The notes beneath the pieces are model-generated. The model saw only the letters and a list, made by a program, of their open reading frames with translations, was not told the origin of the DNA and ran no database searches. Positions 4,685 to 60,200 of a stretch of 64,000 nt of DNA are shown here, one piece after another. Each line of letters begins with the position of its first letter. Within the stretch, counting starts at the first letter, position 1. The DNA comes from Cyanophora paradoxa CCMP329 (Eukaryota > Plantae > Glaucophyta): the NCBI GenBank assembly GCA_004431415.1, contig QPMI01000445.1, positions 208,576-272,575 on the forward strand, read 5' to 3'. Both the position numbers and the translations under genes were made by a program.

Positions 4685-5245
4685 CCGTGAGCGTACGCGC
4701 CGCAGCCGACCCGCAGCCGACCCGTGCTCGCTCCACGCTTGGACTGCGAAGATCGCAGCTGCAGTACTAGTGGACGCACGCGTGCGTGTACGATGATACC
4801 TGCTCGCGCGCGCTACATATACGTACAGAACGAACTACCTGGTGCGAATTCGAACCCTCAGCCTGAAGGAGTCGATCGACTCACTGAGTCAGTCTCACTG
4901 TGAGACTGTCACAGTGTGTGACTCACTTGAGTCACAGTGTGAGACTGCTGTGACTCCGTACGAGTCCCGAGTCCCGACTCCCGAGTCCCGAGTCCGTAGT
5001 ACTACTACTGTCCTACTAGCTATCATGTAGACGTTAAGCATGCGCATAAGTATTAAGTAGTCGCCGCAATCTCTGGGCCTCTGGCCCGCAGACTCGGACT
5101 CACAGGACTTACTGAGTGACGTCTGAGTCGACACTGACTCGACAGTGACTCGACACAGAGCAGTCACGCCGCAGCTGCAGTACTACTAGTAGTGTTAGGC
5201 GGCACACGGCCCGACAGTGTTAACTTACAAGCAACTTGGCAAGTG

Positions 5246-5528
5246 CTGTAAAACATGCAATATCCAGCGTGACCGTCGGACTTTATTTCGGCAAAACCGG
5301 AAAAATGCACCGAAATTGTACGTGGTTCTTCGGCATCATATTTTCGGCATGCGCAACACAGCCAGTCCGCCCAGCTGCAGGCGGCGGGTACATTGATCCC
5401 TCTTCTGCCATACATCTGCATACTAGTAATTCTGGCAGTTTCAAATATTCGGTGCCGCGAGGCTATGCCGAATAACGCCGAATATTAAGTGCCGCAGTGC
5501 ATGCCGCCAGAGATTTTATGTTTTACAG
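5246..5528. mobile_element. Tc1/mariner-type MITE, TIR CTGTAAAACAT..
   Basis: Left end CTGTAAAACATGCAATATC; right end GAGATTTTATGTTTTACAG followed by TA. The left TSD reads TG. Confidence 0.65.
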
Positions 5529-5549
5529 TACGTATACAGTATACTACTA

Positions 5550-5827
5550 CCGTAAAACACTTGAGTAATGCGCGCATGCGCACTCCAGTAATGCTGTAAT
5601 TAATTGATGCGTTTTCTGCAATGAAAACGCATTAATTTGGTACCGCATAAATTAGCGGCATAAAGGTCCGCATTATTATCAAAACGCTAAGAAACGGCTG
5701 TATGTACCCCCCTGCCGCAGCCAAAAAGCTTCAAAACGCATTAATTTGGTGCCGCGTTAATAGCCATAATAGGGGTCCGGGTCCATAAACGCAGTAATTT
5801 CAGGCGCATTACTCAAGTGAAATACGG
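5550..5827. mobile_element. Tc1/mariner (Tc2/pogo-like) MITE, family A
   Basis: TA|CCGTAAAACACTTGAGTAATGCGC ... GCGCATTACTCAAGTGAAATACGG|TA, with internal AAAACGCATTAATTTGG repeats. A related inverted copy lies at 28531-28778. Confidence 0.85.
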
Positions 5828-6448
5828 TAGTAGTAGTAGTAAGTAAACGTAGTCCGTAATCAACACTATATTTTGGAGATATCTCTAGCCCCATTGGGCC
5901 GGGGATTCTACAGACTGATCATGAAGAAAACAGTTCTCGCCAATGGTATATTGCCACCCCCGGGTATCGATCGAAATTGATGTACCGTTAACGTTCGAAT
6001 TCACTGTTAACGTTGCCGCCGTTCAACTTGCCGGCGGCCGCGGCCGGCCCAGCGCTAGCCTAGTACTAGTAGCCGGCGACTAGCCGCCCCGCCGGGCCGC
6101 CGCCCCGCGCGCGGCCCGGCGGCCATGGCATGGCCAGCTGCGGCCGGGCCCGCCGGGCCCGGCCCGGCGGCCGCGGGGGCCGCGGCCCGCGGGCCGCGGG
6201 TTGTGGGCCCAATTGCAAGTTGTGCCGCCCAACTTGTGGGCCCACTTGCCAAGTTGCGGGCCAACTTGCAACCGTTGAACTTCGTTGCAACTTGCAATTG
6301 CAACTTGCGGGCAAGTTGCGGCGGGCATGCGCATGCGCATCAGTAAAATCAGTACAAGCAGGGGGGCTCCGCCCCCCCCGCACCCCCCCCGCTTGCTAGC
6401 TGGGTACAGACCGTACGTATATGTATACAGCTATAAGTCCATGGATTT

Positions 6449-6713
6449 AAATTGACCAATCACCAAATCGCTCGAGTTTCCGACTGGGGCTTTTGACTCG
6501 ACTCGCGTAGTAAGCGATTTTGACGTACCCATCCTGTATTAAATCGACCAATCACCAAATTGCCCGAGTTTCAGACTGAAGCTTTTTGACTCGACTCGCT
6601 GTAGTAATATATTGGCATTTTCCGCCAGCGGAAGGGTCCCACGCTGTGGTAATCGATTGGCATTTTCTGCCAGCGAAAGGGTCCCGCGGCATTTTCTGCC
6701 AGCGAAAGGGTCC
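6449..6713. repeat. Sub-repeat cluster (two ~92-bp-spaced units, then three GGCATTTT..GCCAGCG.AAGGGTCCC units), probably a transposon remnant
   Basis: AAAT.GACCAATCACCAAAT.G..CGAGTTTC at 6449 and 6541; three ~27-bp repeats between 6614 and 6713. Confidence 0.6.
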
Positions 6714-6721
6714 CAGGGGTA

Positions 6722-6964
6722 CAGTAAACCATAGTACTACGCGGCCTGGAACCGCTTGTTTTTTTACTACTCAACAAATGAAATGCACAATTACACCATT
6801 GGTCGCTGTTTCCAGTGGCATTTTTTTGCTTCTCCAAGCTCAAACCGGCCGTAGTTTGCAGGTCACAAACGTCAAATTTGGCAGCAAAAGGTAAGTGCCG
6901 ATTTCCTAGTTTCAAATTCCCAGCCTGGCCTGGTAGTGTGGTGAAAAGGTACTATAGTTCATTG
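6722..6964. mobile_element. Tc1/mariner-type MITE, TIR CAGTAAACCATAGTAC
   Basis: TA|CAGTAAACCATAGTAC ... GTACTATAGTTCATTG|TA; 3 mismatches between the TIRs. Confidence 0.6.
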
Positions 6965-6991
6965 TACTACTGTTATACGTAAAATCGACGG

Positions 6992-7065
6992 TATACTAGT
7001 ACGTACTAGTACGGTACTACGGTACTACTAGTAGTACCGTAGTACAGTACTAGTACTACCTAGTA
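6992..7065. repeat. Chain of 22 TA dinucleotides separated by 0-3 nt (C, G, CG, CC, CCG, CGG, CAG): putative Tc1/mariner excision-footprint array
   Basis: Parsed directly from the sequence; the linkers match the terminal bases of neighbouring MITEs. Confidence 0.65.
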
Positions 7066-7160
7066 ATTTACTACGCGTACGGTATTAGTACTAGTACTGT
7101 AAGCGTCGGTAACTAGTAAGGACTCTACTAAGGAGTCTACTAAGGAGTCGTAGCTATAGT

Positions 7161-7507
7161 TAGGGCACTGGCCGGCGGGTCTAGACCCTTGCACCGGGGC
7201 TGGCCCAAAATTTCAAGTCCTTGCACCGGGGCTGGCCCTAGCGGCTAGGCGGCTCCAAAATCTCGGCTGGCTTGGCAGCGGCTTGCCAGTTACTATATAT
7301 GGTACAAGTGGCCAGCGCGGCTTGGCTGGCTTGGAGCAGCTCGCGCTAACTTCACCAAATCTTCGTTCGCTGGCTCGATTGCGAGCCCAGGGCTTGATGA
7401 CTTGGAAGGCAAGCCATAGAAAGCCGGCAAAACCCCTTGGCTGGCAAGCCAGGGTTTCGGCCCCCTGGCCGGCGAGCTAGCCAGCTTGGCCGCCGGCCAG
7501 TGCCCTA
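7161..7507. mobile_element. hAT-type MITE
   Basis: Perfect 18-bp TIR TAGGGCACTGGCCGGCGG. The 8-bp TSD GTCGTAGT is intact on the right; the left copy is interrupted by CTATAG. Confidence 0.8.
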
Positions 7508-7583
7508 GTCGTAGTAAGGACTACGCGTACGGTATTAGTACTAGTACGGTAAGCGTCGGTAACTAAGTACGGTAAGCGTCGGT

Positions 7584-7844
7584 AATACCAGATCGGAAAT
7601 TAGTGGATCGTAAAACTTCGCCCTCCCACAGGCGAAGTACTGGAGCCCGAAATTAGTGGATCGTAAAACTTTCAGGCTTGTATGGGGCGGTAATTTTGAG
7701 GGGTATACTATGAAGCCGCTTCTCATCAGGGAATTAGTGCACGTGGAGCCGGAAATTAGTGGACTGAGTCAAGATTTCAGTCCACTAATTTCCGGCTCCA
7801 CTAATTTTCAGCGTCCAGTATTTTCCTGTTACACGCCGTGACGG
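7584..7844. mobile_element. Tc1/mariner-type MITE, family B, left TIR truncated
   Basis: Reverse-complement homolog of 27587-27847, with repeated AAATTAGTGGA; right end GTATTTTCCTGTTACACG[CCGTGACG]G|TA. Confidence 0.85.
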
Positions 7845-8269
7845 TAGTGAACCCGGGAATCGGGCGGCCCCGGGCTCTGGCCCGGGTGGCCCCTGGGCCA
7901 TGGGCCGGGCCCGGGGGGCCGGGGCCCGGCCGCCCGGGGGCCGGGGGACCGGGGCCAGGGGGCCCGGCCGGGAGTCCGGGAGTCCACTCCGGCCCACTCC
8001 GGCCGGGAGTCGGCCCGGCCGGCGGCCGGCGCCGGCGCCGCCGGGAGTCTGGGACTCGCCGACTCGGCGAGTCGGGACTCGGGACTCTCCGCCGAGTCTC
8101 CGGGACTCGGGACTCGGGACTCGGGACTCGGGAGTCGGGAATCGACTCGGGATTCGGGAATTCGCCAAGTCAGATCGGAATCCTTGAATCATTGAATGTG
8201 TGATGATTCACTGATCATGACGGATCACTGATGATGTGTTGCCGGCGGCCGGCCAATAGCATCACCGAT

Positions 8270-8381
8270 AACTACCGCGAGGCACTAAATTACCGCCGGC
8301 CTACCAATTCAAATCAACCGTACCCCGGAATTACTAAATATTTTGCGGTCTTACATTGTATTACCCGTTCTAGATCTACAG
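8270..8381. mobile_element. One end of a Tc1/mariner-type MITE, family D
   Basis: Ends ..CCGTTCTA[GATCTA]CAG|TA; its reverse complement loosely aligns with 29071-29160 (TA|CTGTAGAAC..AAAATA.TTAGTA..). Confidence 0.45.
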
Positions 8382-8491
8382 TAATGCCCTCACTGCCCTA
8401 TCACGGAGGCGAATTCGAAGGGGGACGATGCGAAAGAGCGCAAGCGCTAGCAGAGCTCGAGCTAGCTCGAGCTCGAAGCGCTAGGCTGCAC

Positions 8492-8974
8492 TAGTCACTG
8501 AGTGCTGGGTTCAGTCAGGGTACCGGTCCACCTCAAGATTCAGTCAGGCTACCGTGCAAAAACTGAGGAAAATGACCCGGAAATGACCCAGATCTAGATG
8601 CGATCCATCTAAGTTCAAGGTTGCGATGGCAAGCACAGTGCGCGGGCGGTAGAGGGTGATTATGCGAGCGAAGAATACTGGAGAAACGAATTCGGCCCCG
8701 CCAGGTGCACGTGTCAAATGCCGTTAGCCTCGTTAGCGCGGGCGATTTCTTGACGATTCCGACGACAGAAGAACATTTTTCGGTCGACCCAAGTCAAGCT
8801 TCAGATGGGAAAAGCCCACATGTACAGGGGGACACGCTTCAGCAGGCTGTTGTATGGGACTGAGAGAACTTCATGATCAGTCGGCCAATTAAATTTGGTG
8901 CCTCAGTCGGGTCAGTCAGACCCTCTGACTTTGACTGACACTGTGTAGTCTGACAGTGACTGAACCCAGCCCTA
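8492..8974. mobile_element. hAT-type MITE
   Basis: 8-bp TSD GGCTGCAC at 8484-8491 and 8975-8982. TIR TAG.GCTGGGTTCAGTCA; the left copy carries an 8-nt insertion. Confidence 0.8.
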
Positions 8975-9296
8975 GGCTGCACTGCCGCTGCAGATCTAGA
9001 GCTACGTACGTAGTACGTACGCGTCGAACCGTAGCTATAGACTCAGCCTATAGTACGCAGATCTAGATCTAAAGGACCGGCCCGGCGGGGCGGAATATTA
9101 ATGCTGGACTCCGGGAGAACGGGACCGTCCAGACCATACCAGCTGCAGTATGCATGATATGTATAGAAGTGAAGGGCGACGCGGCGGCGGATCCGGATTC
9201 CGGACCCGGGAGGGACTGCACTGGGCCTTGCAGCCTGCAGGAGAGAGGGGCCGTGGAGGCGGAATTCGAATTCAATTATATATATATATATTATTC

Positions 9297-9892
9297 ATGA
9301 TTCGTTGTTTCCGTCCCGGAGTCCGAGCTCGAGGCTTGCCTGCGGCGCCTGCGCCCGCGGCCGTGCGCGCATGCACGCCGCCCCATCCGATGATCGTCTC
9401 TCTCTCTCCTGCTCTCGAATATTAATGCCTTTGCAGACCAGGTCCACGCGCGCTAGCGCTGCATCGACAGCTGGCGGGCAACCCCGCTGTGGACCATCGG
9501 ACGAGCTGCCCGGAGTGCGGCGCCTCCTTCGAGCTCGAGACCCCCCCCCCCCCCCCCCCCGCCCCCCCCCCCCCCCCGCCCCCTCCCCTCCCCCCCTTCC
9601 CCCTCCTCCTCCGTCCGGAGGGGGCGGCCGCGGAGGAGGCGTCATCGGCCAAGAAGATCTAGAGGCCGATCGCGAGCAGCTGCAGGTCGGCAATGGTGCC
9701 CGCGGGAGGGGGGCGGGGCTGGGCCCCGGCCGGGCCGGGGCCGCCCCCGGGGGCTCCGCGTTAACTAATCATAAGTCCGGCGGCAGGGGGCCCCGGGCCG
9801 GGGCGGTACCGGTTGCGGGGTCCGAGGCGGCCGCCAGGGTGGCGCCCGAGGCCTGGCGGCGCGGCGCGGGTCCGGAGGGCGGCGGTGACTAG
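9297..9892 (+). CDS. Possible small Pro/Gly-rich gene or gene fragment
   Basis: ATG at 9297, then a GTGCGC..TTTGCAG intron joining in frame to an ORF with a poly-Pro run. No recognisable domain. Confidence 0.2.
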
Positions 9893-15479: not shown

Positions 15480-15776
15480 GGCTGCGGCCACCCGGCGGCA
15501 GCGCGGGCTACTCCATGGAGCCGCGGGTGACGCCGAGCTGGGAGAGGAGCTTGAGCTCGCGCCAGAGGTCGGCGGCGGAGAGCTCGCCGCGGGCGAGGGC
15601 GCCGTAGCACTCGAGGGTGCGCCGCACGCGCCCGGGCCCCTCGTCCACGAACTCGACCCGGAAGGCCCGCGCCCCGGCCCCCGCCAGCCGCCCGAAGTGC
15701 TCCGCCCCCGTCTGCGCCCTCCCGTTGTACACCGTGTTCCGGCACCCCGCGTCCCCCTGCGCGCGCGGCGGGTCGG
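15480..15776 (-). pseudogene. Inverted near-identical copy of the last exon (with acceptor and part of the 3' UTR) of the U32 gene
   Basis: Reverse complement of ~24742-25044; ORFs 15508-15732 and 24792-25016 differ by one residue (ELSAADL vs ELSGADL). Confidence 0.9.
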
Positions 15777-20953: not shown

Positions 20954-23900
20954 ATGGAGGACCCGACCGCAGCAGCTGCACCTGCAGCTGTGTTCGTTGC
21001 GGGTGCAGGAGTTCCGGCGCGCCCCGCGGCCTCCTCGGTCACGCCCTTTGGCCACCCGCTCGCCGTTCCCGTACGCACGTGCAACGCCCCGCGAGAAAGA
21101 TCTAGGAGCACCGCTACAACAAGGTGCATGCGATCGCCCGCCCGGCGCTTCGTGGCCGCCTCACCGGCCCTCATTCCACGCCGCAGAAGGAATCCGGGGC
21201 TGCAGCTTCGTTCTAGCTTTGTAGGGGGCTCCGCTCGGCAGCTCTTCCGTGCCGCGGCAGCGCCGCCGAGCTCGGCCCCGCGAACGGCGCGAACTCGAGA
21301 TGTCGTCCAGGCCGTCAGCGTGCCTGCGAAGAAAAGCCGATCATCTAGCTCCAGCCCAGAGCGCGCGAGAGCCCCCAGCAGGCCCGAGCTCCTCGCGGTG
21401 CGGTCCCCGCCGGCGCCTCCGGATCCCCTCTGAAGCGGCCTCATGCTCGCCTGCAGCCCGCGGGCAACTGGGACTGTGCGCGGGCGGCGGTGGAGAACGG
21501 CGCGGATGCCATCTATTTCGTGCGCCTGCGCCTCCCGCCTCGCACGGCCTGCTCCCACGCCGGGCCTCCTCCCACGCCGGGCCTTCTCCCCCGCCCCGCC
21601 TCGCCACATCGCCTCCTGCCCCGCCCGGCTATCGGCGGCCCCTCCCGCGGCCCGCCGACCGCCTATCCTTGGGGCGCAGGGCCTGGACCAGTTCAACGCG
21701 CGGCTGCGGGCGGACAACTTCACGGAGGCCGACCTGCCGGGCCTCATGCAGTTCCTCCACTCCCGCGGCGTCAAGGGGTACGTCACCCTCAACACGCTGG
21801 CCTTCACCACCGAGCTCCCCGACGTCGAGAAGTACCTCCGCTCCGTCATCGCCGCCGGTACCCCCTTCCGAGCCGCCCCGTACCCCTCCGGCCTCCCCTC
21901 AGCTCGCCCCGCAGGCGTGGACGCGCTGATCGTGCAGGACGTCGGCGTCTGCAAGCTCATACGGCACCTGAGCCCCGACTTCCCCATACACGCCTCCACG
22001 CAGATGGCCCGCCCCCCTGCAGCCCGCCCCGCCCGCCCCCTCCCCCCTGACCCCCGCGCAGACGGTCACGAGCGACGCCGGGGTGCAGTTCGCGGAGGCG
22101 CTGGGCTGCAGCGTCGTCGTGCTGGCGCGCGAGTGCACCATCGGCGAGATCGCCGAGATCCAGAGGCAGAGCCCCGTGCAGGCCCGCTCTCCCGCCCCCG
22201 CCCCCGCCCCCGCCCCGCCCTTTGCTTCTCTCCTCACCGCCACGCCCCCCTCAGGTCCCCCTGGAAGTGTTCGTTCGTCTCCCCGCGAGGCAGGCCGCCC
22301 GCCCGGCGCCGACGGGGCCGGCCGGCGCGCAGATTCGTGCACGGGGCGCTCTGCGTGGCGTACAGCGGGCAGTGCCTGACGAGCGAGGCGCTGGGCGGGC
22401 GCTCGGCGAACCGGGGCGAGTGTGCGCAGGCGTGCCGCATGCAGTACCGTCTGCTGGCGGACGGGAAGGAGGTGGACCTGGGCGGGCGCGAGTACCTGCT
22501 CTCCCCGCAGGACCTGTGCGGGGCGGAGCTGCTGCCGCAGCTCGTGGCGGCCGGCGTCTCCTCCCTCAAGATCGAGGGCCGCCTGAAGACGCCCGAGTAC
22601 GTGGCGAGCGTCGTCCGCGTCTACCGTGAGGCCCTCGACCGCGCCGCCGCCGCCGCCGCCCCCGTCGTCCGCCCCCGCCTCTGCCCCCCGCCCGCCGGCG
22701 GCCCCGCCGGCTGACGGGGCGGGCGGGGGCCGGCAGGAGGACCCGCGGGAGGCGGCGCCGCAGCCGCTGACGGCGGCGCAGCGGTACGAGCTCGAGATGG
22801 CCTTCTCCAGGGGGCTCTCCCCGGGCTGGCTCGCCGGCATCGACAACCAGGTCTGTGGGAGGGGCCGCCGGGGCTCGTCCCGGGGCTCCGTCCGAACCCT
22901 TGTCGCCGGCAGCGGCTGGTGCACGCGCGGTTCGGGAAGAAGCGCGGGGCGCGCGTGGGGGTCGTGCGCTCGGTGGACGCCCGGGCGCGGCGCGTGGTGA
23001 TCGGGGGGGTGGAGGCCTCGGCGGCCCTCAAGCCCGGCGACGGCGTCGTCTTCGACGCCGGGCGCCCCGCCGAGGGCGAGCCCGGCGGCTTCGTCTACGA
23101 GGTCGAGCCGGGGCGCGCCCGCGGCTCCCTCGTCGCCGCCTTCGGCCCCCGCACGGACGTCCGCCGCGTGCGCCCCGGCGACATCGTGTGGAAGACCAGC
23201 GACCCCGCCCTCTCCAGGGCCCTCCGCAAGAGCTGGGCCCCGGCCCGCTCCGAGGCCGAGGCCGCCGGCGCCGCCGCCGCCGGCGAGGCCTCCGCCGGCT
23301 CCGGTACCCCCGTCCGCTTCCGCCGCCCCATCGAGATCGAGGTGCGCGGGGCGGGGGCGGGGCCTGGGCGGCCCCTGACAGGCGCGGCGACCGGGGGCGG
23401 GCAGGTCCGGGGGCGGCTCGGGGAGCCGCTCTCGGCGGTGGCGCGGGACCCCGAGACGGGCGTGACGGCCGCGGCGCGCTCGGAGGGGCCCCTCGAGGCC
23501 GCCCGCAGCCGGCCCCTCACCCGCGACTCCCTCCTCGAGCAGCTGGCCCGCGCCCCCCGCCCCGCCCGCCCCGCCGCGCGCTGAGGGTTTGAGGGCAGGG
23601 GCGGCTGGGGAACACGCCGTTCGCGCTGGAGGAGGGGGGCCTGGAGAGCGCGGGGCTGGACCTCGCGGCCGGCCTCGCGCTGCCGGTCTCGGAGCTGAAC
23701 CGCCTGCGGCGCGCCCTCGTGGAGTCCCTCGAGGCCGCCCGCGCCGCCCCGCGCCGCTGGAGCCTCGCCCCGCCCGCCGCCGCCTCCTACCGCACCGCCC
23801 TCCGCTTCCCCGAGCAGCGCGCCCCGGGCGCCGCGGCGGCGGCGGAGGCTGCGGCGGCGGAGATCGTGCCGCTGGTGCGGAGCGGGGGCGCGCAGCTGCG

Positions 23901-25016
23901 GGCGGCGCTGGAGGGGCGGCCGGGGCGGGTGTACCTGGACGTGGAGGACCCGCGGGCGTACGCGGCGCTGGTGCCCGAGGCGCGCGAGATCTCCCCCGGC
24001 ACCGAGGTCTTCGTCGCCCCGCCCCGCATCTTCAAGCCCAACGAGCGCTGGATCCTCGAGCAGGCCCGCCCCCCGCCCCCGCCTCCCCCTCCTTTCCCCG
24101 CCTGACCCCGCTTCCTTCAGGTGGCGCGCGGGGGGGCGGACGGGTACCTCGTCCGCAACTACGAGCACCTGCGCTTCTTCGGCGCCGAGCGCGGGGCCCG
24201 CATGGCGCGTCCCTGCCCGTACCCCCGTCTCTCTTCGAAAGCCCTCATCCCTCTACCCCGCGCAGGTGGCGGACTTCTCGTTCAACGTGGCGAACCCGCT
24301 CTCGGCGGCGCACTTCCTGGGCCTGCCGCGGGCCGACCCGCTTGGGGGCGGGGAGGGAGGGGAGGGCGCGCGGGCGCTGGAGCGGCTGACGGCGAGCTAC
24401 GACCTAAGCGCGGCGGAGCTGGTGCCGCTGCTGGAGGCGTGCCCCCCGGGGGTCCTCGAGGTCACCCTCCACCAGCGCATCCCCATGTTCCACATGGAGC
24501 ACTGGCGCCCTCCCCTCCCCGCCCCTCTTCCCTCCCACCCCCACCCCCGCCCCCGCTCACGTGCCTTCGCGTCTCGCAGCGTCTTCTGCGCGTTCCTGAG
24601 CGAGGGGAAGGACTTCCGGGACTGCGGGCGGCCCTGCGAGGCGCACGCCGTCGAGCTCGAGGACCGCGTCGGCACCCGCCACACCCTCAAGGCCCGCCCG
24701 CCCCGCCCCCGCGCCCCTCCGCCTCTGCCGCGAAACTCGACCCGACTCGCCGTCCGCGCGCGCGCAGGGGGACGCGGGGTGCCGGAACACGGTGTACAAC
24801 GGGAGGGCGCAGACGGGGGCGGAGCACTTCGGGCGGCTGGCGGGGGCCGGGGCGCGGGCCTTCCGGGTCGAGTTCGTGGACGAGGGGCCCGGGCGCGTGC
24901 GGCGCACCCTCGAGTGCTACGGCGCCCTCGCCCGCGGCGAGCTCTCCGGCGCCGACCTCTGGCGCGAGCTCAAGCTCCTCTCCCAGCTCGGCGTCACCCG
25001 CGGCTCCATGGAGTAG
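20954..25016 (+). CDS. rlhA: Peptidase U32 family, long RlhA/YdcP-like form with DUF3656-like region and predicted organellar transit peptide; 15 exons
   Basis: PELLA|PAG..ENGADAIYF|G, IHASTQM, LEVFVHGALCVAYSGQC..SANRGECAQACR (Fe-S cysteines), LLSPQDL, SLKIEGR; Ser/Ala/Arg-rich N-terminal extension of ~130 aa. Confidence 0.9.
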
Positions 25017-25460
25017 CCCGCGCTGCTGCCGGGTGGCCGCAGCCCGCGCCCCGCGTGCGGTCGAGACGCCGAAACTCGCGAGACGCCGTGAGTGCGATCG
25101 AGTGTGAGAATTGCGAGGCATGCATATGTACATGTTACCGTAGTACGTTCAAGTCCCGACTCTGGCACTGAGTCAACGTTATGACAAATGCAAAAAGACG
25201 CTGACAGACAGTGACAGTAGTATACGTACGACTCCCAGCCTTTGACCCTCCCTGAGTCCCAGGGTCGGGGTACATTCATGAATTTTACCAGCATGCGCGC
25301 GCGGACCATGAATTTTACCATGAACTTGGAATTTCTAGACTCTGAGTCTAGCTAGTCTGAGAGCAGGCCCTGGCAGCCAGTGCCAGGCCCAGTGGGCCAG
25401 TGCCGTGCCGCAGTGCCACGGTGGCAGGCGCCCGGCTCGGATCCGGATTCCGATCCGGAG

Positions 25461-25518
25461 TATACGTATACGTATACCGTATACGTACTACTACGCGTAC
25501 GGTACTACTAGGCTAGTA
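25461..25518. repeat. Second TA-linker chain (putative excision-footprint array)
   Basis: TA TA CG TA TA CG TA TA CCG TA TA CG TA C TA C TA CGCG TA CGG TA C TA C TA.. Confidence 0.6.
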
Positions 25519-26564: not shown

Positions 26565-27225
26565 CTCATGATCGATATCAGGCCCGGGAGAGTCGGCCCT
26601 CGGCCGCGGGCCAATGGCTGGCAAACAGTGGCAATGCCTGGCATCATCACTGATTTCATCGGTGGCATGCCATGATTCGGCCCATGAACCGGCCCCTGAA
26701 TCTGCTGCGCTAGCGTTAATTATAAGTTGCCGTGAACGACGGAACGTCAATTGCAACCTTCATGAATGACTCAGTGATATCGATGCTGAAATTAGCAGCT
26801 GAATTCGAAGAAAACTTTGAAAAGCTGCGAGCTGATCATGCCATCGATGATGAACCAATTAGTTGTGCACGTGGCAATTGCAATTACACTCTGAATTTAC
26901 ACACTCGCAGCTAGGGCGAACACACTAGTACTGTTCGACATTATAATTAATATTCTGGCTGTTTCAAGTTTAAGTCCGTGGAGAGTCACTGGAGACTCTG
27001 ATATTTCGCGACGAATTCGAAATTCGCACACATAGAGATCGCGAACCGTTGAACTCGGAAGATCGGGTATTGCAGGGCAATTTGCAGCTACTACTACTAT
27101 TGCTGTTCACCATTATTTGAAAAAAAGCATATATGGATACCATATGACTGCGATTCATGGTTATGCGAAGTTGCGAACTGCGATCCTCAGACTCCGAGTC
27201 TCCGGATCCGACGGTCAGAGCGCTA

Positions 27226-27541
27226 CCGTAGAACACAATATTAAGGTCTGTAATTTATTATGTCGTCCCGAAATTATTTCGCCTTGGACGGGACAAAACG
27301 ACATAATTTGTGGACGTCATAATACGGGCTCGCTAAGTCGCCCTACAGTACCCCCCAAAATTACCGCCCCATACAATTGTTTTTTTGGTGAATTACCGGC
27401 CACAGCCTCTAGTCTAATTACCGCCCCATACAAGCCTGAAAATTTCATGCCGACATAATTTGGGGACGACATATTTCGCATGGAAAAGGCTCGGGTTTTA
27501 AAACGACATAAATTTGCATGACATAATATTGTGTTCTACGG
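27226..27541. mobile_element. Tc1/mariner-type MITE, family C
   Basis: TA|CCGTAGAACACAATATTA ... TAATATTGTGTTCTACGG|TA, a perfect 18-bp TIR; internal GACATAA repeats. Confidence 0.9.
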
Positions 27542-27586
27542 TAGCGTTCCTGGATCGACTCTCCGAGCTCGAGCTCGAGTGATCTA

Positions 27587-27847
27587 CCGTGTAACAGGAA
27601 AATACTGGACGCTGAAAATTAGTGGAGCCGGAAATTAGTGGACCGAAATCTTGACTCAGTCCACTAATTTCCCGCTCCAGTATTTCTCTGCTGCTAAGCT
27701 GCCCCGTACAGTACCCCCCAAAATTACCGCCCCATACAAGCCTGAACAGGTTTTGGTCCACTAATTTCGGGCTCCAGTATTTCGCCTATGAGAGGGCCAA
27801 GTTTTATGATCCACTAATTTCCGATCTGGTATTTTCCTGTTACACGG
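27587..27847. mobile_element. Tc1/mariner-type MITE, family B (complete)
   Basis: TA|CCGTGTAACAGGAAAATAC ... GTATTTTCCTGTTACACGG|TA, a perfect 19-bp TIR. Confidence 0.9.
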
Positions 27848-27972
27848 TATACGTAGATCTGGAGTCTGGATCGCCCACTGGCCCTGGCAGTGGCTGCCAC
27901 TGGCTGGCACTGGCCACGGCCATGGCATGGGCTAGTGGGACTGTGGGAGGCTGCAGCTGGGACTCTCGGAGC

Positions 27973-28018
27973 CCGGACTCCGGAGTCCGGACTCCGGAGT
28001 CCGGAGTCCGGACTCCGG
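27973..28018. repeat. 7-bp tandem CCGGA(C/G)T array; similar CGGGA(C/G)T arrays at 8101-8140 and 25889-25930
   Basis: Six units that differ only by a C/G transversion at one position. Confidence 0.85.
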
Positions 28019-28530
28019 CCGCGGATACCCGGACCGTCGGACTCCCGGATCCGGAGCCGCCGGGGCCTGCCGCCCTATAGGCGGCTAGGCCTAGTACTAG
28101 GCCGCGAGGCTACTTACTACTTAGTAGTAGCGGGCTACTAGCGGCCCTGCGTAATGGAGGCCGCTGCTGGACCAGTGCTGGTCAGTGGTCACGCTCAGGC
28201 TCGCGCGGCTCAGCGGCTGCTGCACTGGTGAATTCGAATTGACGAATCAGTGTGGTGATGGCACATGTACAGTGAATCCGATCCGTGTCATGATTCCGTG
28301 ATGCCTGGCTATAGGCAGCCTGGCATAATAAATAAATCAGTGGCATTGCCTGCATCATGGCTGCAATGCCGCTGCATGCACGTTTTGCAAATATATGCAT
28401 GACTCAGTGACTCAAGAAGATCGCCGAGTCGGACCAGCCTGAGTGAAGATTCACTAAAGAAACTACAGCGGACTGGCTGGCTCAGCCCGTACGGCGGTAC
28501 CTGGACTCCGGTCCAGCCCACTAGGTACTA

Positions 28531-28778
28531 CCGTAAAACACTTAATTAATGCGCTCGATATTAATGCGTTTTTGGACCCGGACCCCTCGTATGGCTAATA
28601 ATGCGCCCCCAAATTAATGCGTTTTGGAGCTTTCTGCCTGCGTTAGGGGGGTACGTACCGCAGTTTTCTTAGCGTTTCAATATTAATGCGCCCCCGAATT
28701 AATGCGTTCTGCCTGCGGAGAACGCATTAATACGGGGGCGCATTAATTAAGTGCGCGCATTACTTAAGTGTTCTACGG
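28531..28778. mobile_element. Tc1/mariner-type MITE, family A (inverted relative to 5550-5827)
   Basis: TA|CCGTAAAACACTTAATTAATGCGC ... GCGCATTACTTAAGTGTTCTACGG|TA; internal GGACCCGGACCCC matches the reverse complement in the left copy. Confidence 0.85.
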
Positions 28779-30243
28779 TAGTAGTACAGTACTAGTACTG
28801 GGCCAGTCTCCCGGGTCGTCCGGGACTCCCGGGACTTCTGAATCAAAGTTATGACTCCGAGTCCAGTGAGTCGCTCCGCGGCCGAGCCTCCGACTCGGCG
28901 AGTCGGAGGATCCCGGGCCGGGCCCGGCCGGGACTCCGGGAGGACCGGGATCGGGGCCCGGGGGTCCCGGACTCCCGGTCCGCCGCCGGGTCCCCGGGGC
29001 CCGGGACCGGCCGATTCCGGGCCGAAGCGCTAGCCGAGTCGGAACTTCGGAAATGACTCGGAAATGCATACTGTAGAACTGGTTAATTTAGTACAGGAAA
29101 ATAATTAGTACTTTGCCACATTAGCAGCTGGTAATACTTTAGTAGGTCGGTCTTCGCGGGGCTTTTCAAGTTTGTATGGCGGAGACGGAGGCTCACGGAG
29201 CTACCCCTCAGAATTCTCGGCCTCATTGACGACATCTCAGAGTCTACCGGCTAACTTCGTAAGTTTTGCAAAAACATATTTTGGCTGGCGCGGCAGACGC
29301 CGGCAGTACGTAATTATATAAGTGGCGCGGCACTGGCGCCGGGCGGGCAGTGGCGGCGGCGGCGCCGGCGCCCGGCCGCCGGCGGCCGCCGGCCTGGCTC
29401 CGGCGGCCGCCGGGCCGGCGCCGGGCCGCCGGGCCACCGGCGGCCCACCGCGCGCCGGCCAGCCCGGCGGCCTGCCGGCGCCAGGCCCCCTGGCAGGCTG
29501 GGCCAGGCTCCCGGCCAGCCCCCGGGCCCCGACTCTCAGACTCTGAGACTCAGACTGAGAGTCTACCGTGACTCCGTGAGTAATGACATGATTGACATCA
29601 TATTGACTCAGTGAGCAGCGTGCCAGTATGATACCCTGGTAGTAAAATAACTCTAATAAAGCAGCACCGCCGCAGGCAGCACTGGACTCGTGACTGGAGC
29701 AGCAGCAGGCTGAGCCAGCAGCAGCAGCAGCAGCGCGCGGCAGCAGCATGCGCAAACCGGCACCGGACTCTGGGAGGTTGATCGGCTGCTTGCGCTTGCT
29801 GCAGGTTTCGTGTTTGCACCGGCAGGCCTGGGCCTAGGCGAGCTTCGGAATTGCGAATCCTGCAGCAACGTTAACCAGCGCCGCGCACGCAGTCGCTGAG
29901 CGTGCACGTATACGTATATACGTATAGATGGATAGGGCGGTGAAGGCCTAGAATCGAAACATAAGGCTAGGGCTATCAGCTTCCGCGCAAGTCGAATCAA
30001 CGGCACGCGCAGCACTCGCCGCGCACGCGCGAGTGCGCCGTTTCCTTCAGCTGGCGAGCCCGCAGCCGGTCGGATTGAATTAGCTATAGGTCGCAGCCTC
30101 ACTTGAAAGCAATGAGCATCCTTACGCGCCAACCTTCAAATCCGCAAGGGGGGGGCACTAGTACTAGTACTGTGCCCCGCACAGCGGCGGGATCAGGATC
30201 AGGTGGATCAGGCGGGCGACCGCGAGGGCCTGTGCTGCATCGG

Positions 30244-54200: not shown

Positions 54201-57200
54201 CTCATGCGAGAGCTGTGCAGACACCTTCGTTGGCTCTTCGTGGTGGCTTGCTGAGAATGCAAACGGAACTGACACATCCCAGTTCGCCGACTCCGTCATG
54301 CGCATGTTCAAGACCTTCGCGTCGAAGGCGGTCCGCTGCGGCGTGTGCGGCGCGAGCCCGTCCGTCAGCTCGGGCCTCCGCGTCGCCATCTTCACCGGCC
54401 AAGTTTGTCACAACCAAGAGGGCCAGGGCGACTTCAATGTCGGCGGATCCCGCAATGAGACCGCCGGTTTGGTCGTGCCTCCTGAGCTCCAAAAGCTCTC
54501 GAGATCTCTGAACGGCACCGATGGTACGCAACTGACCGTGTACGTCTACCCACGCGGACCATACCCGGAGGCCACGGAGGGCACTCTCAACGGCACAAAC
54601 TCCGTCGTAAAGTAGTGCGCCGGCGCCGCATGCAAAGTCAAGTGGAAGGCACGCTCTAAGCGCTACGCGTTTACCGCGCAGCAATGTCTCAAGCTATGTG
54701 ATGGAGGTGGATGTTGTAGGGCTCGAAGTGTCCAACCTTTCCGAGCCTATCACGGTGTGATGATTTTATATCATTAAAAAGCGAACTAGATCTAGATTAC
54801 GGTCCTTTGATTTGCGAACCATTTGTGATCTTGAGCGCAGTTCCAAATCCCTCTGCGGATGCCAAATGGAGAGCTCATCAACCCCAACCAAAAGCTAGAT
54901 CTAATATATTACGACAAGATCAACAAAATCTGGATCAGCTGGTAACTGTCGCCTGCTTTGCTTTCGCAATATGCAGCAAGCACAGTTCTAATGCCTTCTG
55001 TCCGCACAGCGGAAATGTCACCATGATCCTCGACATGGCGGTCATCACCGCCGTTGCCTCATGCAATCATCTCACGCCTTTCGCAAGTGCGACATTCCCT
55101 CATAAGCATGGGTTTATATTATAATTACCGACGAGCTGACAATCGACACCGCAGTTGGCATTGGGGAGGTGATCACGCAGGCAGTGCAAGAGTCTCCTCC
55201 AGGCGCAGCTCTGCCGCCGACGGGTGCAGCCGCGCAAGGTTCCTACTTCAACTGGCAGACAACGGAGCCAGAAGGCTCGGGCGTGCATCCAGCAGCTGTG
55301 GCAGTCCCGGTGGTGGTGGGAAGCATTACGATTGCACTCCTTGCCGCGGCAATCATCTACACAAGAAACATGGGACGGGCAACTACTTTGTCCCAGAAGC
55401 CCCTCGGTCCTGCGGGGCGGGTTGAAGTTGTTACGATCGGCCCGTCGCAGCCATCGACTGATCGGCCTGTGTCTATGTCGGCCGGGGCCGCCCGCAAGTC
55501 GACGGCGCCCACGAACCTGCAGCTGGTGGATGTCGCGTCCGGCATGTTCGGCGGCACGACGGGCACGCTCTCGTGGTCGCTGCCGACGACGGGCCCGCCG
55601 CTTGCGCACCGTGTGCTGCGCGACGGCGTTGAGATTGCGAGGGTGCCGGGGACGCAAACGTCGGTGGAGGTGCCGGACCTTGCGAGGGGCTTGGTGTCGA
55701 CATTTGTCGTGGTGGCAGTGGACGGCGCCAGCGGAGCCGAGTCGAAGCCGCTCATCGCTGGCATCGCCCGGGACCCGAACAGTGGCATCACCCTCAAAGC
55801 GGTGCCTACCGCGTCGAACGGCTCGTCAGCGCAGCTCTCGTGGAACACGCCTGCTGCGTCTGATACAGTGACTCTCTACAAGCTGCTGGTGAACGGCCAG
55901 GTCGTCGCGACGCTGCCGCCGTCGGGAATCGCGATGAACGGTTTCGAGGCAAAGAGCCTGCCGTCGGGTGCGGTGGCGGAGGTGGTGGCGGTGTTCGCGT
56001 CAGGCGCCACGCTGTCGAGCACGCCTGTGCCGATCTCGGCGGGAGGCGGCGGCAGCGGGTTTGGCGTTGCAATTGGGGCCGCCCGCAAGTCGACGGCGCC
56101 CACGAACCTGCAGCTGGTGGATGTCGCGTCCGGCATGTTCGGCGGCACGACGGGCACGCTCTCGTGGTCGCTGCCGACGACGGGCCCGCCGCTTGCGCAC
56201 CGTGTGCTGCGCGACGGCGTTGAGATTGCGAGGGTGCCGGGGACGCAAACGTCGGTGGAGGTGCCGGACCTTGCGAGGGGCTTGGTGTCGACATTTGTCG
56301 TGGTGGCAGTGGACGGCGCCAGCGGAGCCGAGTCGAAGCCGCTCATCGCTGGCATCGCCCGGGACCCGAACAGTGGCATCACCCTCAAGGCGGTGCCTAC
56401 CGCGTCGAACGGCTCGTCAGCGCAGCTCTCGTGGAACACGCCTGCTGCGTCTGATACAGTGACTCTCTACAAGCTGCTGGTGAACGGCCAGGTCGTCGCG
56501 ACGCTGCCGCCGTCGGGAATCGCAATGAACGGTTTCGAGGCAAAGAGCCTGCCGTCGGGTGCGGTGGCGGAGGTGGTGGCGGTGTTCGCGTCAGGCGCCA
56601 CGCTGTCGAGCACGCCTGTGCCGATCTCGGCGGGAGGCGGCGGCAGCGGGTTTGGCGTTCGGGCCGCCCGCAAGTCGACGGCGCCCACGAACCTGCAGCT
56701 GGTGGATGTCGCGTCCGGCATGTTCGGCGGCACGACGGGCACGCTCTCGTGGTCGCTGCCGACGACGGGCCCGCCGCTTGCGCACCGTGTGCTGCGCGAC
56801 GGCGTTGAGATTGCGAGGGTGCCGGGGACGCAAACGTCGGTGGAGGTGCCGGACCTTGCGAGGGGCTTGGTGTCGTTGTCGTCGGTGGCAGTGGACGGCG
56901 CCAGCGGAGCCGAGTCGAAGCCGCTCATCGCTGGCATCGCCCGGGACCCGAACAGTGGCATCACCCTCAAAGCGGTGCCTACCGCGTCGAACGGCTCGTC
57001 AGCGCAGCTCTCGTGGAACACGCCTGCTGCGTCTGATACAGTGACTCTCTACAAGCTGCTGGTGAACGGCCAGGTCGTCGCGACGCTGCCGCCGTCGGGA
57101 ATCGCGATGAACGGTTTCGAGGCAAAGAGCCTGCCGTCGGGTGCGGTGGCGGAGGTGGTGGCGGTGTTCGCGTCAGGCGCCACGCTGTCGAGCACGCCTG

Positions 57201-60200
57201 TGCCGATCTCGGCGGGAGGAGGCGGCGGCAGCGGGTTTGGCGTTGGGGCCGCCGCAAGTCGACGGCGCCCACGAACCTGCAGCTGGTGGATGTCGCGTCC
57301 GGCATGTTCGGCGGCACGACGGGCACGCTCTCGTGGTCGCTGCCGACGACGGGCCCGCCGCTTGCGCACCGTGTGCTGCGCGACGGCGTTGAGATTGCGA
57401 GGGTGCCGGGGACGCAAACGTCGGTGGAGGTGCCGGACCTTGCGAGGGGCTTGGTGTCGACATTTGTCGTGGTGGCAGTGGACGGCGCCAGCGGAGCCGA
57501 GTCGAAGCCGCTCATCGCTGGCATCGCCCGGGACCCGAACAGTGGCATCACCCTTAAGGCGGTGCCTACCGCGTCGAACGGCTCGTCAGCGCAGCTCTCG
57601 TGGAACACGCCTGCTGCGTCTGATACAGTGACTCTCTACAAGCTGCTGGTGAACGGCCAGGTCGTCGCGACGCTGCCGCCGTCGGGAATCGCGATGAACG
57701 GTTTCGAGGCAAAGAGCCTGCCGTCGGGTGCGGTGGCGGAGGTGGTGGCGGTGTTCGCGTCAGGCGCCACGCTGTCGAGCACGCCTGTGCCGATCTCGGC
57801 GGGAGGCGGCGGCAGCGGGTTTGGCGTTGCAATTGGGGCCGCCCGCAAGTCGACGGCGCCCACGAACCTGCAGCTGGTGGATGTCGCGTCCGGCATGTTC
57901 GGCGGCACGACGGGCACGCTCTCGTGGTCGCTGCCGACGACGGGCCCGCCGCTTGCGCACCGTGTGCTGCGCGACGGCGTTGAGATTGCGAGGGTGCCGG
58001 GGACGCAAACGTCGGTGGAGGTGCCGGACCTTGCGAGGGGCTTGGTGTCGACATTTGTCGTGGTGGCAGTGGACGGCGCCAGTGGAGCCGAGTCGAAGCC
58101 GCTCATTGCTGGCATCGCCCGGGACCCGAACAGTGGCATCACCCTCAAAGCGGTGCCTACCGCGTCGAACGGCTCGTCAGCGCAGCTCTCGTGGAACACG
58201 CCTGCTGCGTCTGATACAGTGACTCTCTACAAGCTGCTGGTGAACGGCCAGGTCGTCGCGACGCTGCCGCCGTCGGGAATCGCGATGAACGGTTTCGAGG
58301 CAAAGAGCCTGCCGTCGGGTGCGGTGGCGGAGGTGGTGGCGGTGTTCGCGTCAGGCGCCACGCTGTCGAGCACGCCTGTGCCGATCTCGGCGGGAGGCGG
58401 CGGCAGCGGGTTTGGCGTTGGGGCCGCCCGCAAGTCGACGGCGCCCACGAAACCTGCAGCTGGTGGATGTCGCGTCCGGCATGTTCGGCGGCACGACGGG
58501 CACGCTCTCGTGGTCGCTGCCGACGACGGGCCCGCCGCTTGCGCACCGTGTGCTGCGCGACGGCGTTGAGATTGCGAGGGTGCCGGGGACGCAAACGTCG
58601 GTGGAGGTGCCGGACCTTGCGAGGGGCTTGGTGTCGACATTTGTCGTGGTGGCAGTGGACGGCGCCAGCGGAGCCGAGTCGAAGCCGCTCATCGCTGGCA
58701 TCGCCCGGGACCCGAACAGTGGCATCACCCTTAAGGCGGTGCCTACCGCGTCGAACGGCTCGTCAGCGCAGCTCTCGTGGAACACGCCTGCTGCGTCTGA
58801 TACAGTGACTCTCTACAAGCTGCTGGTGAACGGCCAGGTCGTCGCGACGCTGCCGCCGTCGGGAATCGCGATGAACGGTTTCGAGGCAAAGAGCCTGCCG
58901 TCGGGTGCGGTGGCGGAGGTGGTGGCGGTGTTCGCGTCAGGCGCCACGCTGTCGAGCACGCCTGTGCCGATCTCGGCGGGAGGTGGCGGCAGCGGGTTTG
59001 GCGTTGGGGCCGCCCGCAAGTCGACGGCGCCCACGAACCTGCAGCTGGTGGATGTCGCGTCCGGCATGTTCGGCGGCACGACGGCACGCTCTCGTGGTCG
59101 CTGCCGACGACGGGCCCGCCGCTTGCGCACCGTGTGCTGCGCGACGGCGTTGAGATTGCGAGGGTGCCGGGGACGCAAACGTCGGTGGAGGTGCCGGACC
59201 TTGCGAGGGGCTTGGTGTCGACATTTGTCGTGGTGGCAGTGGACGGCGCCAGCGGAGCCGAGTCGAAGCCGCTCATCGCTGGCATCGCCCGGGACCCGAA
59301 CAGTGGCATCACCCTTAAGGCGGTGCCTACCGCGTCGAACGGCTCGTCAGCGCAGCTCTCGTGGAACACGCCTGCTGCGTCTGATACAGTGACTCTCTAC
59401 AAGCTGCTGGTGAACGGCCAGGTCGTCGCGACGCTGCCGCCGTCGGGAATCGCGATGAACGGTTTCGAGGCAAAGAGCCTGCCGTCGGGTGCGGTGGCGG
59501 AGGTGGTGGCGGTGTTCGCGTCAGGCGCCACGCTGTCGAGCACGCCTGTGCCGATCTCGGCGGGAGGCGGCGGCAGCGGGTTTGGCGTTGCAATTGGGGC
59601 CGCCCGCAAGTCGACGGCGCCCACGAACCTGCAGCTGGTGGATGTCGCGTCCGGCATGTTCGGCGGCACGACGGGCACGCTCTCGTGGTCGCTGCCGACG
59701 ACGGGCCCGCCGCTTGCGCACCGTGTGCTGCGCGACGGCGTTGAGATTGCGAGGGTGCCGGGGACGCAAACGTCGGTGGAGGTGCCGGACCTTGCGAGGG
59801 GCTTGGTGTCGACATTTGTCGTGGTGGCAGTGGACGGCGCCAGCGGAGCCGAGTCGAAGCCGCTCATTGCTGGCATCGCCCGGGACCCGAACAGTGGCAT
59901 CACCCTCAAAGCGGTGCCTACCGCGTCGAACGGCTCGTCAGCGCAGCTCTCGTGGAACACGCCTGCTGCGTCTGATACAGTGACTCTCTACAAGCTGCTG
60001 GTGAACGGCCAGGTCGTCGCGACGCTGCCGCCGTCGGGAATCGCGATGAACGGTTTCGAGGCAAAGAGCCTGCCGTCGGGTGCGGTGGCGGAGGTGGTGG
60101 CGGTGTTCGCGTCAGGCGCCACGCTGTCGAGCACGCCTGTGCCGATCTCGGCGGGAGGCGGCGGCAGCGGGTTTGGCGTTGGGGCCGCCCGCAAGTCGAC

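Follow-up and report, generated by a model that had tools for sequence, protein, structure and literature searches.

A TA-periodic tract in the Cyanophora paradoxa genome as a possible compound palindrome of fold-back insertions

A spacer of 74 bp (positions 6992–7065) in a 64-kb window of the Cyanophora paradoxa genome – the window being the whole stretch of 64,000 nucleotides that was analysed – is composed of nothing but TA dinucleotides and linkers of up to three letters. A sequence-only reading had taken the spacer for a serial record of transposon excision. Our analysis shows that the tract is a palindrome, that it contains motifs matching two simple rules of inverted-copy insertion, that both rules are strongly over-represented throughout the window, and that insertions of the kind the rules prescribe distinguish paralogous copies at other sites in it. 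We give about even credence to the view that fold-back insertion, a habit of this genome, built the tract as a compound palindrome, rather than that it is a log of transposon visits.

The tract is a TA chain and a single palindrome

Direct parsing of 6992–7065 yields TA units and 21 linkers with zero remainder: one empty linker, seven C, seven G, two CGG, and one each of CG, CCG, CAG and CC. This confirms, to the letter, the earlier parse of all 74 bp into TA plus short linkers. Extended to 7073 by the same rule (TA plus 0–3 letters, repeated), the chain counts 24 TA units, and no other in the window is as long. Altogether the window contains 28 chains of at least five units and 10 of at least seven. 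The longest chain in simulated 64-kb sequences was 8 units (order 3, whole window), 11 units (Markov order 3, non-coding part) or 14 units (Markov order 5, non-coding part): set against these maxima, a chain of 24 units is real and not a product of chance. Similar chains that had been pointed out elsewhere were seen again at 5524–5554, 9003–9019, 25461–25518 and 28774–28797, and an additional one was found at 5823–5845. The window as a whole is GC-rich eukaryotic DNA (about 50–82% GC in 2-kb steps). The non-coding stretch that holds the longest chain also holds a tract of ~70 bp that is nearly all C (9541–9612).

The most conspicuous property of the tract is its symmetry. Positions 6994–7065 form a near-palindrome of 72 bp centred within the TA at 7029/7030, and 32 of the 36 arm positions pair; a repeat finder calls the same interval as overlapping inverted arms. 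Within it lie a perfect palindrome of 32 bp (7014–7045) and, inside the left arm, a perfect palindrome of 18 bp (6994–7011). The 32-bp palindrome is equalled in length by a single other (27973–28004), which has no TA, and none in the window is longer. When the linkers were shuffled, 0.02% of 20,000 trials equalled the symmetry of the tract (P about 2e-4) and 1% gave a perfect arm of 16 nt. As single-stranded DNA the tract is predicted to fold into one hairpin (–25.9 kcal/mol; z = –4.1 against dinucleotide shuffles). No strand is assigned to the chain, to these palindromes or to the motifs described below. Palindromic mazes of this kind are numerous in the window, where perfect palindromes of at least 14 bp number 38 against about 8 expected.

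The departures from symmetry are themselves simple. Three of the four arm mismatches belong to a single triplet, TAC, that is direct where the symmetry calls for an inverted copy; the remaining mismatch sets TACGGTA (7010–7016) opposite TACAGTA (7043–7049), the site of the only CAG linker, which is one substitution away from perfect symmetry. The lone CAG is therefore a variant of its mirror partner and not the independent scar of a CAG-tipped element. More generally, in a mirror-symmetric tract no more than about half of the units (about 10) can be independent events, and such symmetry is unlike the product of separate visits to random TA steps. The proposal that one site has logged about 20 cycles of insertion and excision fails on this count: the symmetry, at P about 2e-4, caps the independent units at about half that number.

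Two fold-back insertion rules operate across the window

Two rules were defined, in which X is any triplet and rc(X) its reverse complement: a 6-bp rule, X to X-rc(X)-X, and an 8-bp rule, X to X-C-rc(X)-G-X. Products of both are far more frequent in the window than expected: 296 occurrences of X-rc(X)-X against about 40, and 60 of X-C-rc(X)-G-X against about 3.5. The rules are also specific. Words of length 3 stand out, with 15 occurrences at length 4 and 7 at length 5; for the 8-bp rule, the letter pair C...G gives 60 occurrences, compared with 0–17 for the remaining 15 pairs. Second to C...G is X-G-rc(X)-C-X, with 17 occurrences in the window, three of which fall within the tract (at 7010, 7018 and 7031).

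The rules are not confined to static motif counts: in four cases a rule-type insertion separates paralogous copies within the window. In a tandem array of 585-bp units, 3 of the 12 copies have TTGCAATTG in place of TTG, a 6-bp insertion, and GTG has become GTGCACGTG in a comparison of two copies of a MITE (family C, described below). A second difference between these two copies obeys the 8-bp rule: in the right inverted repeat of copy 2, ACG has become ACGCCGTGACG (ACG-C-CGT-G-ACG, 7833–7843), an insertion that copy 1 is without; this case shows that the 8-bp rule operates at a site that holds no TA. The fourth case concerns a MITE at 7161–7507 with tips TAGGGCAC and TAGGGCACTGGCC and an 8-bp target duplication, GTCGTAGT (7147–7515 overall), features that mark it as hAT-like and unlike the TA-flanked families. 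In its left target duplication TAG has become TAGCTATAG (TAG-CTA-TAG, 7151–7159), while the right copy (7508–7515) is without the insertion. Here the 6-bp rule has generated new TA steps.

A fifth stereotyped difference, an insertion of GCGCAT in copy 1 of MITE family A relative to copy 2, makes a palindrome and matches neither rule exactly. All five stereotyped indels between copies are thus palindrome-making, four of the five obey the rules, and none of the five is a TA-plus-tip unit placed at a TA. Besides these five, the copies are distinguished by indels of 1–4 bp and by one gap of 25 bp.

Some of the repeats that provided these comparisons have features of their own. The 585-bp array (55484–62499) comprises about 12 copies of 97–98% identity and sits in a long open reading frame that matches fibronectin type III and PA-IIL (fucose-binding lectin); the TTGCAATTG insertion is found in copies 1, 4 and 7, a spacing suggestive of higher-order repetition in blocks of three. 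In MITE C copy 2 a tandem 20-mer, AGTACGGTAAGCGTCGGTAA, has taken the place of the outermost 17 nt of the left inverted repeat (region 7560–7590). This 20-mer occurs at 7543–7562 and 7566–7585, and a near-copy lies at 7093–7112.

TA chains are prominent among the places where rule products are concentrated, and they share that position with quite different sequence. When the 25 rule-densest windows of 80 bp were ranked, the TA chains at 25441 and 7021 came first and third; 12 of the 25 hold 0–2 TA and consist of words such as GAATTC and TTGCAA or of GGCC/GCC repeats. Double 6-bp-rule motifs at one site account for 13 of the 296 occurrences, about as rare as independence predicts, and a comparison of repeated same-site hits by the 6-bp rule with chance, made within the window, gave no clear excess. 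Positive feedback is thus not shown as a general property of the process.

The rules account for part of the tract

The 14 single-letter linkers make TAC and TAG units of much of the tract. The triplets TAC, ACT and CTA, together with their complements GTA, AGT and TAG, are a single trinucleotide class in two orientations, and it is this class that reads as 'TA plus C or G'. The tract can accordingly be read as one class of unit whose orientation switches every one or two units, and switching of this kind is the effect of the 6-bp rule on ACT or AGT. Two overlapping 6-bp-rule motifs, AGT-ACT-AGT and ACT-AGT-ACT, are present in the right arm (7046–7057). Motifs of the 8-bp rule are present on both sides of the axis: GTA-C-TAC-G-GTA at 7014–7024, which bears one C linker and one CGG linker, and its exact mirror image, TAC-C-GTA-G-TAC at 7035–7045, which bears the CCG linker and one G linker. 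The 8-bp rule, which acts on every triplet, explains the CGG and CCG linkers. Its general rate suffices for TAC and GTA: 3 occurrences are found among 1162 such triplets, compared with 60 in the 64-kb window as a whole.

Exhaustive removal of rule-type insertions removes 22 bp of the tract and then stops, at 52 of 74 bp, and tracts with shuffled linkers are no less reducible (P = 0.11). The rules therefore cover part of the tract and not the whole. Given that coverage is partial and that double hits are rare, the tract would need either an extra local factor or larger duplications, including at least one fold-back of ~36 bp. The factor and the larger duplications alike are postulates for the tract, the ~36-bp fold-back among them.

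TA-flanked MITEs and the linker spectrum

The window holds several families of MITE with TA flanks. Families A, B and C start CCGT and finish ACGG. With its TA flanks, copy 1 of family A (A1) occupies 5548–5829 on the plus strand (element 5550–5827; TA-CCGTAAAACACTT ... ACGG-TA) and copy 2 (A2) occupies 28529–28780 on the minus strand (element 28531–28778). Family B lies at 27224–27543 on the plus strand (element 27226–27541; TA-CCGTAGAACAC ... ACGG-TA), and family C is represented by copy 1 at 27585–27849, also on the plus strand (element 27587–27847; TA-CCGTGTAACAGG ...), and by copy 2, the right end of which is at 7844. A further family, E, is recognised from an end at 5520–5530 (...TTTTACAG-TA, that is, ...ACAG-TA). 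A common form, C(C/T)GTA(A/G)AACA, is found at the tips of families A, B and E. The statement that the linkers CCG, CGG and CAG are terminal triplets of MITEs is therefore correct, for families A, B and C as regards CCG and CGG and for family E as regards CAG. A Pfam scan of the ten longest open reading frames of the window found no transposase. Elsewhere in the window, an inverted duplicate of 288 bp (15480–15767 and 24757–25044; 99.3% identity) brackets a very GC-rich block (70–82% GC) with a match to Peptidase_U32 at 21443–22714.

The association of chains with these elements, described earlier as frequent, holds for some chains and not for others. The chain at 5524–5554 lies between E and A1, that at 5823–5845 follows A1, and that at 28774–28797 adjoins A2; the chains at 9003–9019 and 25461–25518 abut no MITE. 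Beyond its TA flanks A1 is bordered by TACTAC and GTAGTA, the same palindrome as that at the centre of the tract, so that the tract centre, TACTAC-TA-GTAGTA, equals the rebuilt empty site of A1. These elements may well find suitable targets in TA chains. Family B has nearly palindromic flanks, GAGCGC-TA-GCGTTC, that do not form a TA chain. Immediately beyond their TA flanks, A and B are thus each bordered by inverted-symmetric DNA (5542–5835 and 27218–27549), and the flanks of A and B are unrelated to each other. Symmetry of this sort points to a preference for palindromic targets or to outward growth of an inverted repeat.

These associations bear on a reduced form of the original proposal. 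Here MITEs that target TA (Tc1/mariner or Stowaway-like) and have C...G tips would land preferentially in the tract; a number of the units (TA-CCG-TA, TA-CGG-TA, TA-CAG-TA and perhaps TA-C-TA or TA-G-TA) would be excision footprints, each adding a new TA, and a later fold-back would have doubled the record. TA-flanked MITEs with CCGT...ACGG and ...ACAG tips do exist in the window, the two copies of family A are both set in DNA resembling such chains, and the tract centre matches an empty site. The canonical footprints of Sleeping Beauty are 'cag' or 'ctg' between copies of TA (PMC5224488); by analogy, MITEs with the tips found here would leave TA-CCG-TA or TA-CGG-TA and TA-CAG-TA or TA-CTG-TA.

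The spectrum of linkers in the non-coding part of the window allows the influence of MITE tips to be separated from that of palindromy. Among 2-nt linkers the four that are palindromic (CG, GC, TA and AT) are found 62 times against 12.8 expected, and the other twelve 38 times against 32.6. Prefixes and suffixes of MITE tips are without enrichment (CC 1, GG 1, CA 2 and TG 6, where 2–3 of each are expected). Linkers of 3 nt that create an odd palindrome of 7 bp number 41 against 13.6, and the others 25 against 32.5. With palindromic linkers in excess and tip prefixes at their expected level, the enrichment follows palindromy. One element of the spectrum does favour footprints: TA-CNG-TA heptamers, which comprise the CCG/CGG and CAG/CTG linkers and are the most enriched of the 3-nt class, occur 27 times against 4.9 (about 5.5-fold), compared with 4 against 2.6 (about 1.6-fold) for TA-GNC-TA. 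This difference is predicted by a mariner-type footprint and not by palindromy alone. A comparison of linkers with the tips of terminal inverted repeats, carried out within the window, thus comes out divided, with palindromy rather than tip prefixes governing the spectrum as a whole and the TA-CNG-TA heptamers enriched.

Inspection of individual heptamers narrows the excess. Six of the 17 TACCGTA or TACGGTA sites are MITE ends, because a CCGTA tip beside a TA flank already spells the heptamer, and two are copies made by local duplication. Of the nine that are left, three are exact 8-bp-rule motifs, accounted for by the general rate of the rule, two fit its G...C variant and another comes close to a motif. 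True scars could be present among the TA-CNG-TA units in small number, in which case mariner-type footprints would have made a minor contribution.

Against the reduced model stand the mirror symmetry, which leaves it at most about 10 independent units; the linkers themselves, 14 of 21 being a single C or G; and the two-letter tip prefixes, which show no enrichment. Likewise, the broader identification of the linkers as Tc1/mariner footprints cannot be sustained: 4 to 6 of the 21 have the form that qualifies (TA, two or three tip letters, TA). No transposase was found among the ten longest open reading frames of the window, and TA footprints contribute 0 of 5 to its stereotyped between-copy indels. 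Excision in rice offers a further yardstick: clean footprints were left by 8 of 94 DNA-transposon excisions, and the rest deleted flanking DNA (18 bp on average) or added filler (PMC4423477). By this standard twenty clean, stacked scars would be unusual. We consider the reduced model unlikely. The idea of footprints as such is not refuted – the MITE tips, the enrichment of TA-CNG-TA and the chains that adjoin MITEs all speak for it – but its central claim, a serial log, is not borne out.

Variation and searches for relatives

Contigs from four public sequencing runs (2012, 2019 and two of 2024), all of one organism and possibly of one strain, were compared over 5000–9500. Among the contigs listed, those of two short-read runs are identical to the window over 7016–7210, and none of those listed shows the left arm of the tract; the part of the tract that is covered shows no indel or length variation across the four runs, in contigs that are short and break at the palindrome. 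Two short-read contigs begin at 7016, two bases inside the palindrome core. A scan of metagenomes with a unique 21-mer from the left flank gave no match; when a 15-mer from the tip of MITE A served as the probe, the result was 120 chance matches and no true relative. Six metagenome contigs (L020, L070, L083, L103, L111 and L112) carry an unrelated repeat family that has 17 nt, TACCGTAAAACACTTGA, in common with the tip of MITE A; there the shared 17 nt are preceded by repeats resembling GGGTCACGGGTCAG, and the overlap is probably due to chance. In the literature on the Cyanophora genome we found no description of such tracts or scars.

A quite improbable alternative is that the 72-bp palindrome is a mobile or dispersed piece of DNA – a fold-back element, or terminal inverted repeats that have lost their interior – inherited as a unit and not grown in place. 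That the tract forms a perfect hairpin is in keeping with this, as is an exact match of 19 nt between the right arm and the flank of A2. The match is marginal in comparison with linker shuffles (P = 0.014 to 0.03 before correction, with 8 comparisons). Homology of the tract to other chains, or to the rebuilt empty sites of A1 and A2, was also considered, and we place no reliance on it given how marginal the 19-nt match is. The summed contig depth over 6963–7113 is several times that of the lowest-depth bins, as expected of a dispersed piece, but a neighbouring duplicated 46-mer (7070–7115) can produce the same signal. No second copy of the arm was found within the window, and the ends of the tract (TA on the left, AT on the right) carry no target duplication.

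That the tract is an ordinary degenerate microsatellite or minisatellite shaped by replication slippage alone is very unlikely. In its favour, Tandem Repeats Finder reports arrays of period 11 (6.8 copies) and period 8 (5.2 copies), the neighbourhood includes a (GTA)5 run (5827–5841), and removal of tandem duplicates takes the 74 bp to 28 bp. Against it, the period-11 array has 74% matches with 25% indels, shuffled linkers reduce equally well (P = 0.46, so that this measure does not discriminate), and slippage, which copies head to tail, yields neither mirror symmetry nor orientation flips every one or two units.

Discussion

How might the fold-back insertion process have produced the tract? 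A short run of units of the TAC/GTA class would have been struck repeatedly by fold-back insertions of inverted copies, adding 6 bp or 8 bp at a time. At least one larger fold-back would then have doubled an arm of ~36 bp into a hairpin-forming palindrome of 72 bp, which substitutions and small tandem duplications would later have blurred. On this account the TA periodicity would be a by-product of the class of unit, and the CGG and CCG linkers would owe their C and G to the letters of the 8-bp rule. That the process seen elsewhere in the window also built the tract, that events took this order, and that one of the enzymes considered below was responsible, is what we infer.

Two kinds of enzymology are candidates. 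In the first, a transposon with C...G tips and a target duplication of 3 bp would be excised and the break mended by hairpin-type repair. Excision by hAT, CACTA and Transib-like elements involves hairpins on the flanking DNA, the opening of which (P-nucleotides) leaves the flank followed by its own reverse complement. Where the target duplication is 3 bp long, such a footprint has the form X-rc(X)-X, and if one tip letter is kept on each side it has the form X-C-rc(X)-G-X: these are the two rules. The tract differs in needing a fold-back of ~36 bp, far longer than a footprint.

The second candidate is snap-back synthesis during alternative end joining, which would give inverted copies; in studies of polymerase theta and SD-MMEJ, the copies made by snap-back are reportedly inverted. 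Papers on this pathway (PMC4912351, PMC5728401, PMC5068794) describe repair that copies nearby sequence and is favoured by DNA with secondary structure. Such a preference would explain the continued growth of a tract already rich in palindromes, and the copying of nearby sequence would fit palindrome-rich DNA that breeds more palindrome. The inserts described here differ in being stereotyped (a word length of exactly 3, with fixed C and G), fixed in the germ line and present at high density.

Comparison with other known systems helps to place the tract. To Tc1/mariner footprints it is alike in that TA-flanked, C-N-G-tipped elements are present and that four linkers (CGG twice, CCG and CAG) have the predicted form; it differs in that most linkers are 1 nt long, the units are mirror-symmetric, and those with CGG and CCG conform to the 8-bp rule, which operates regardless of TA. 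We know of no stacked arrays of Tc1/mariner excision footprints. With compound or imperfect microsatellites and with short palindromes capable of forming cruciforms, the tract has in common its low-complexity units, its hairpin potential and the likelihood of being a fragile or mutable site; it is set apart from compound microsatellites by orientation flips every one or two units and by the fact that the whole array is a single palindrome.

The process may also be coupled to its own product. TA chains could be self-reinforcing hot spots of breakage and repair, in which a TA-rich palindrome draws in TA-targeting MITEs or forms cruciforms, and repair by inverted copying, or by scars derived from element tips, adds TA and lengthens the palindrome. 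We regard this coupling as doubtful. If it did operate, the tract would preserve in its sequence, in partly mirrored form, a history of recurrent events at a single site, and the coupling would offer a route by which perfect palindromes of at least 30 bp arise from nothing.

The observations carry a caution for the reading of similar DNA: TA periodicity beside Stowaway-like MITEs is not safely attributed to footprints, since the tips of such elements in their flanks (TA-C-N-G-TA) already resemble one. As to kind, the tract belongs with templated inverted insertions and palindromic low-complexity DNA, which are known; here the rules act at triplets that contain TA. Palindromes of this sort can form hairpins or cruciforms and break assemblies, and they may be fragile sites. 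If the tract did arise by fold-back insertion, it would be a local example of how a stereotyped insertion process builds long perfect palindromes and TA-periodic, low-complexity DNA within a GC-rich genome.
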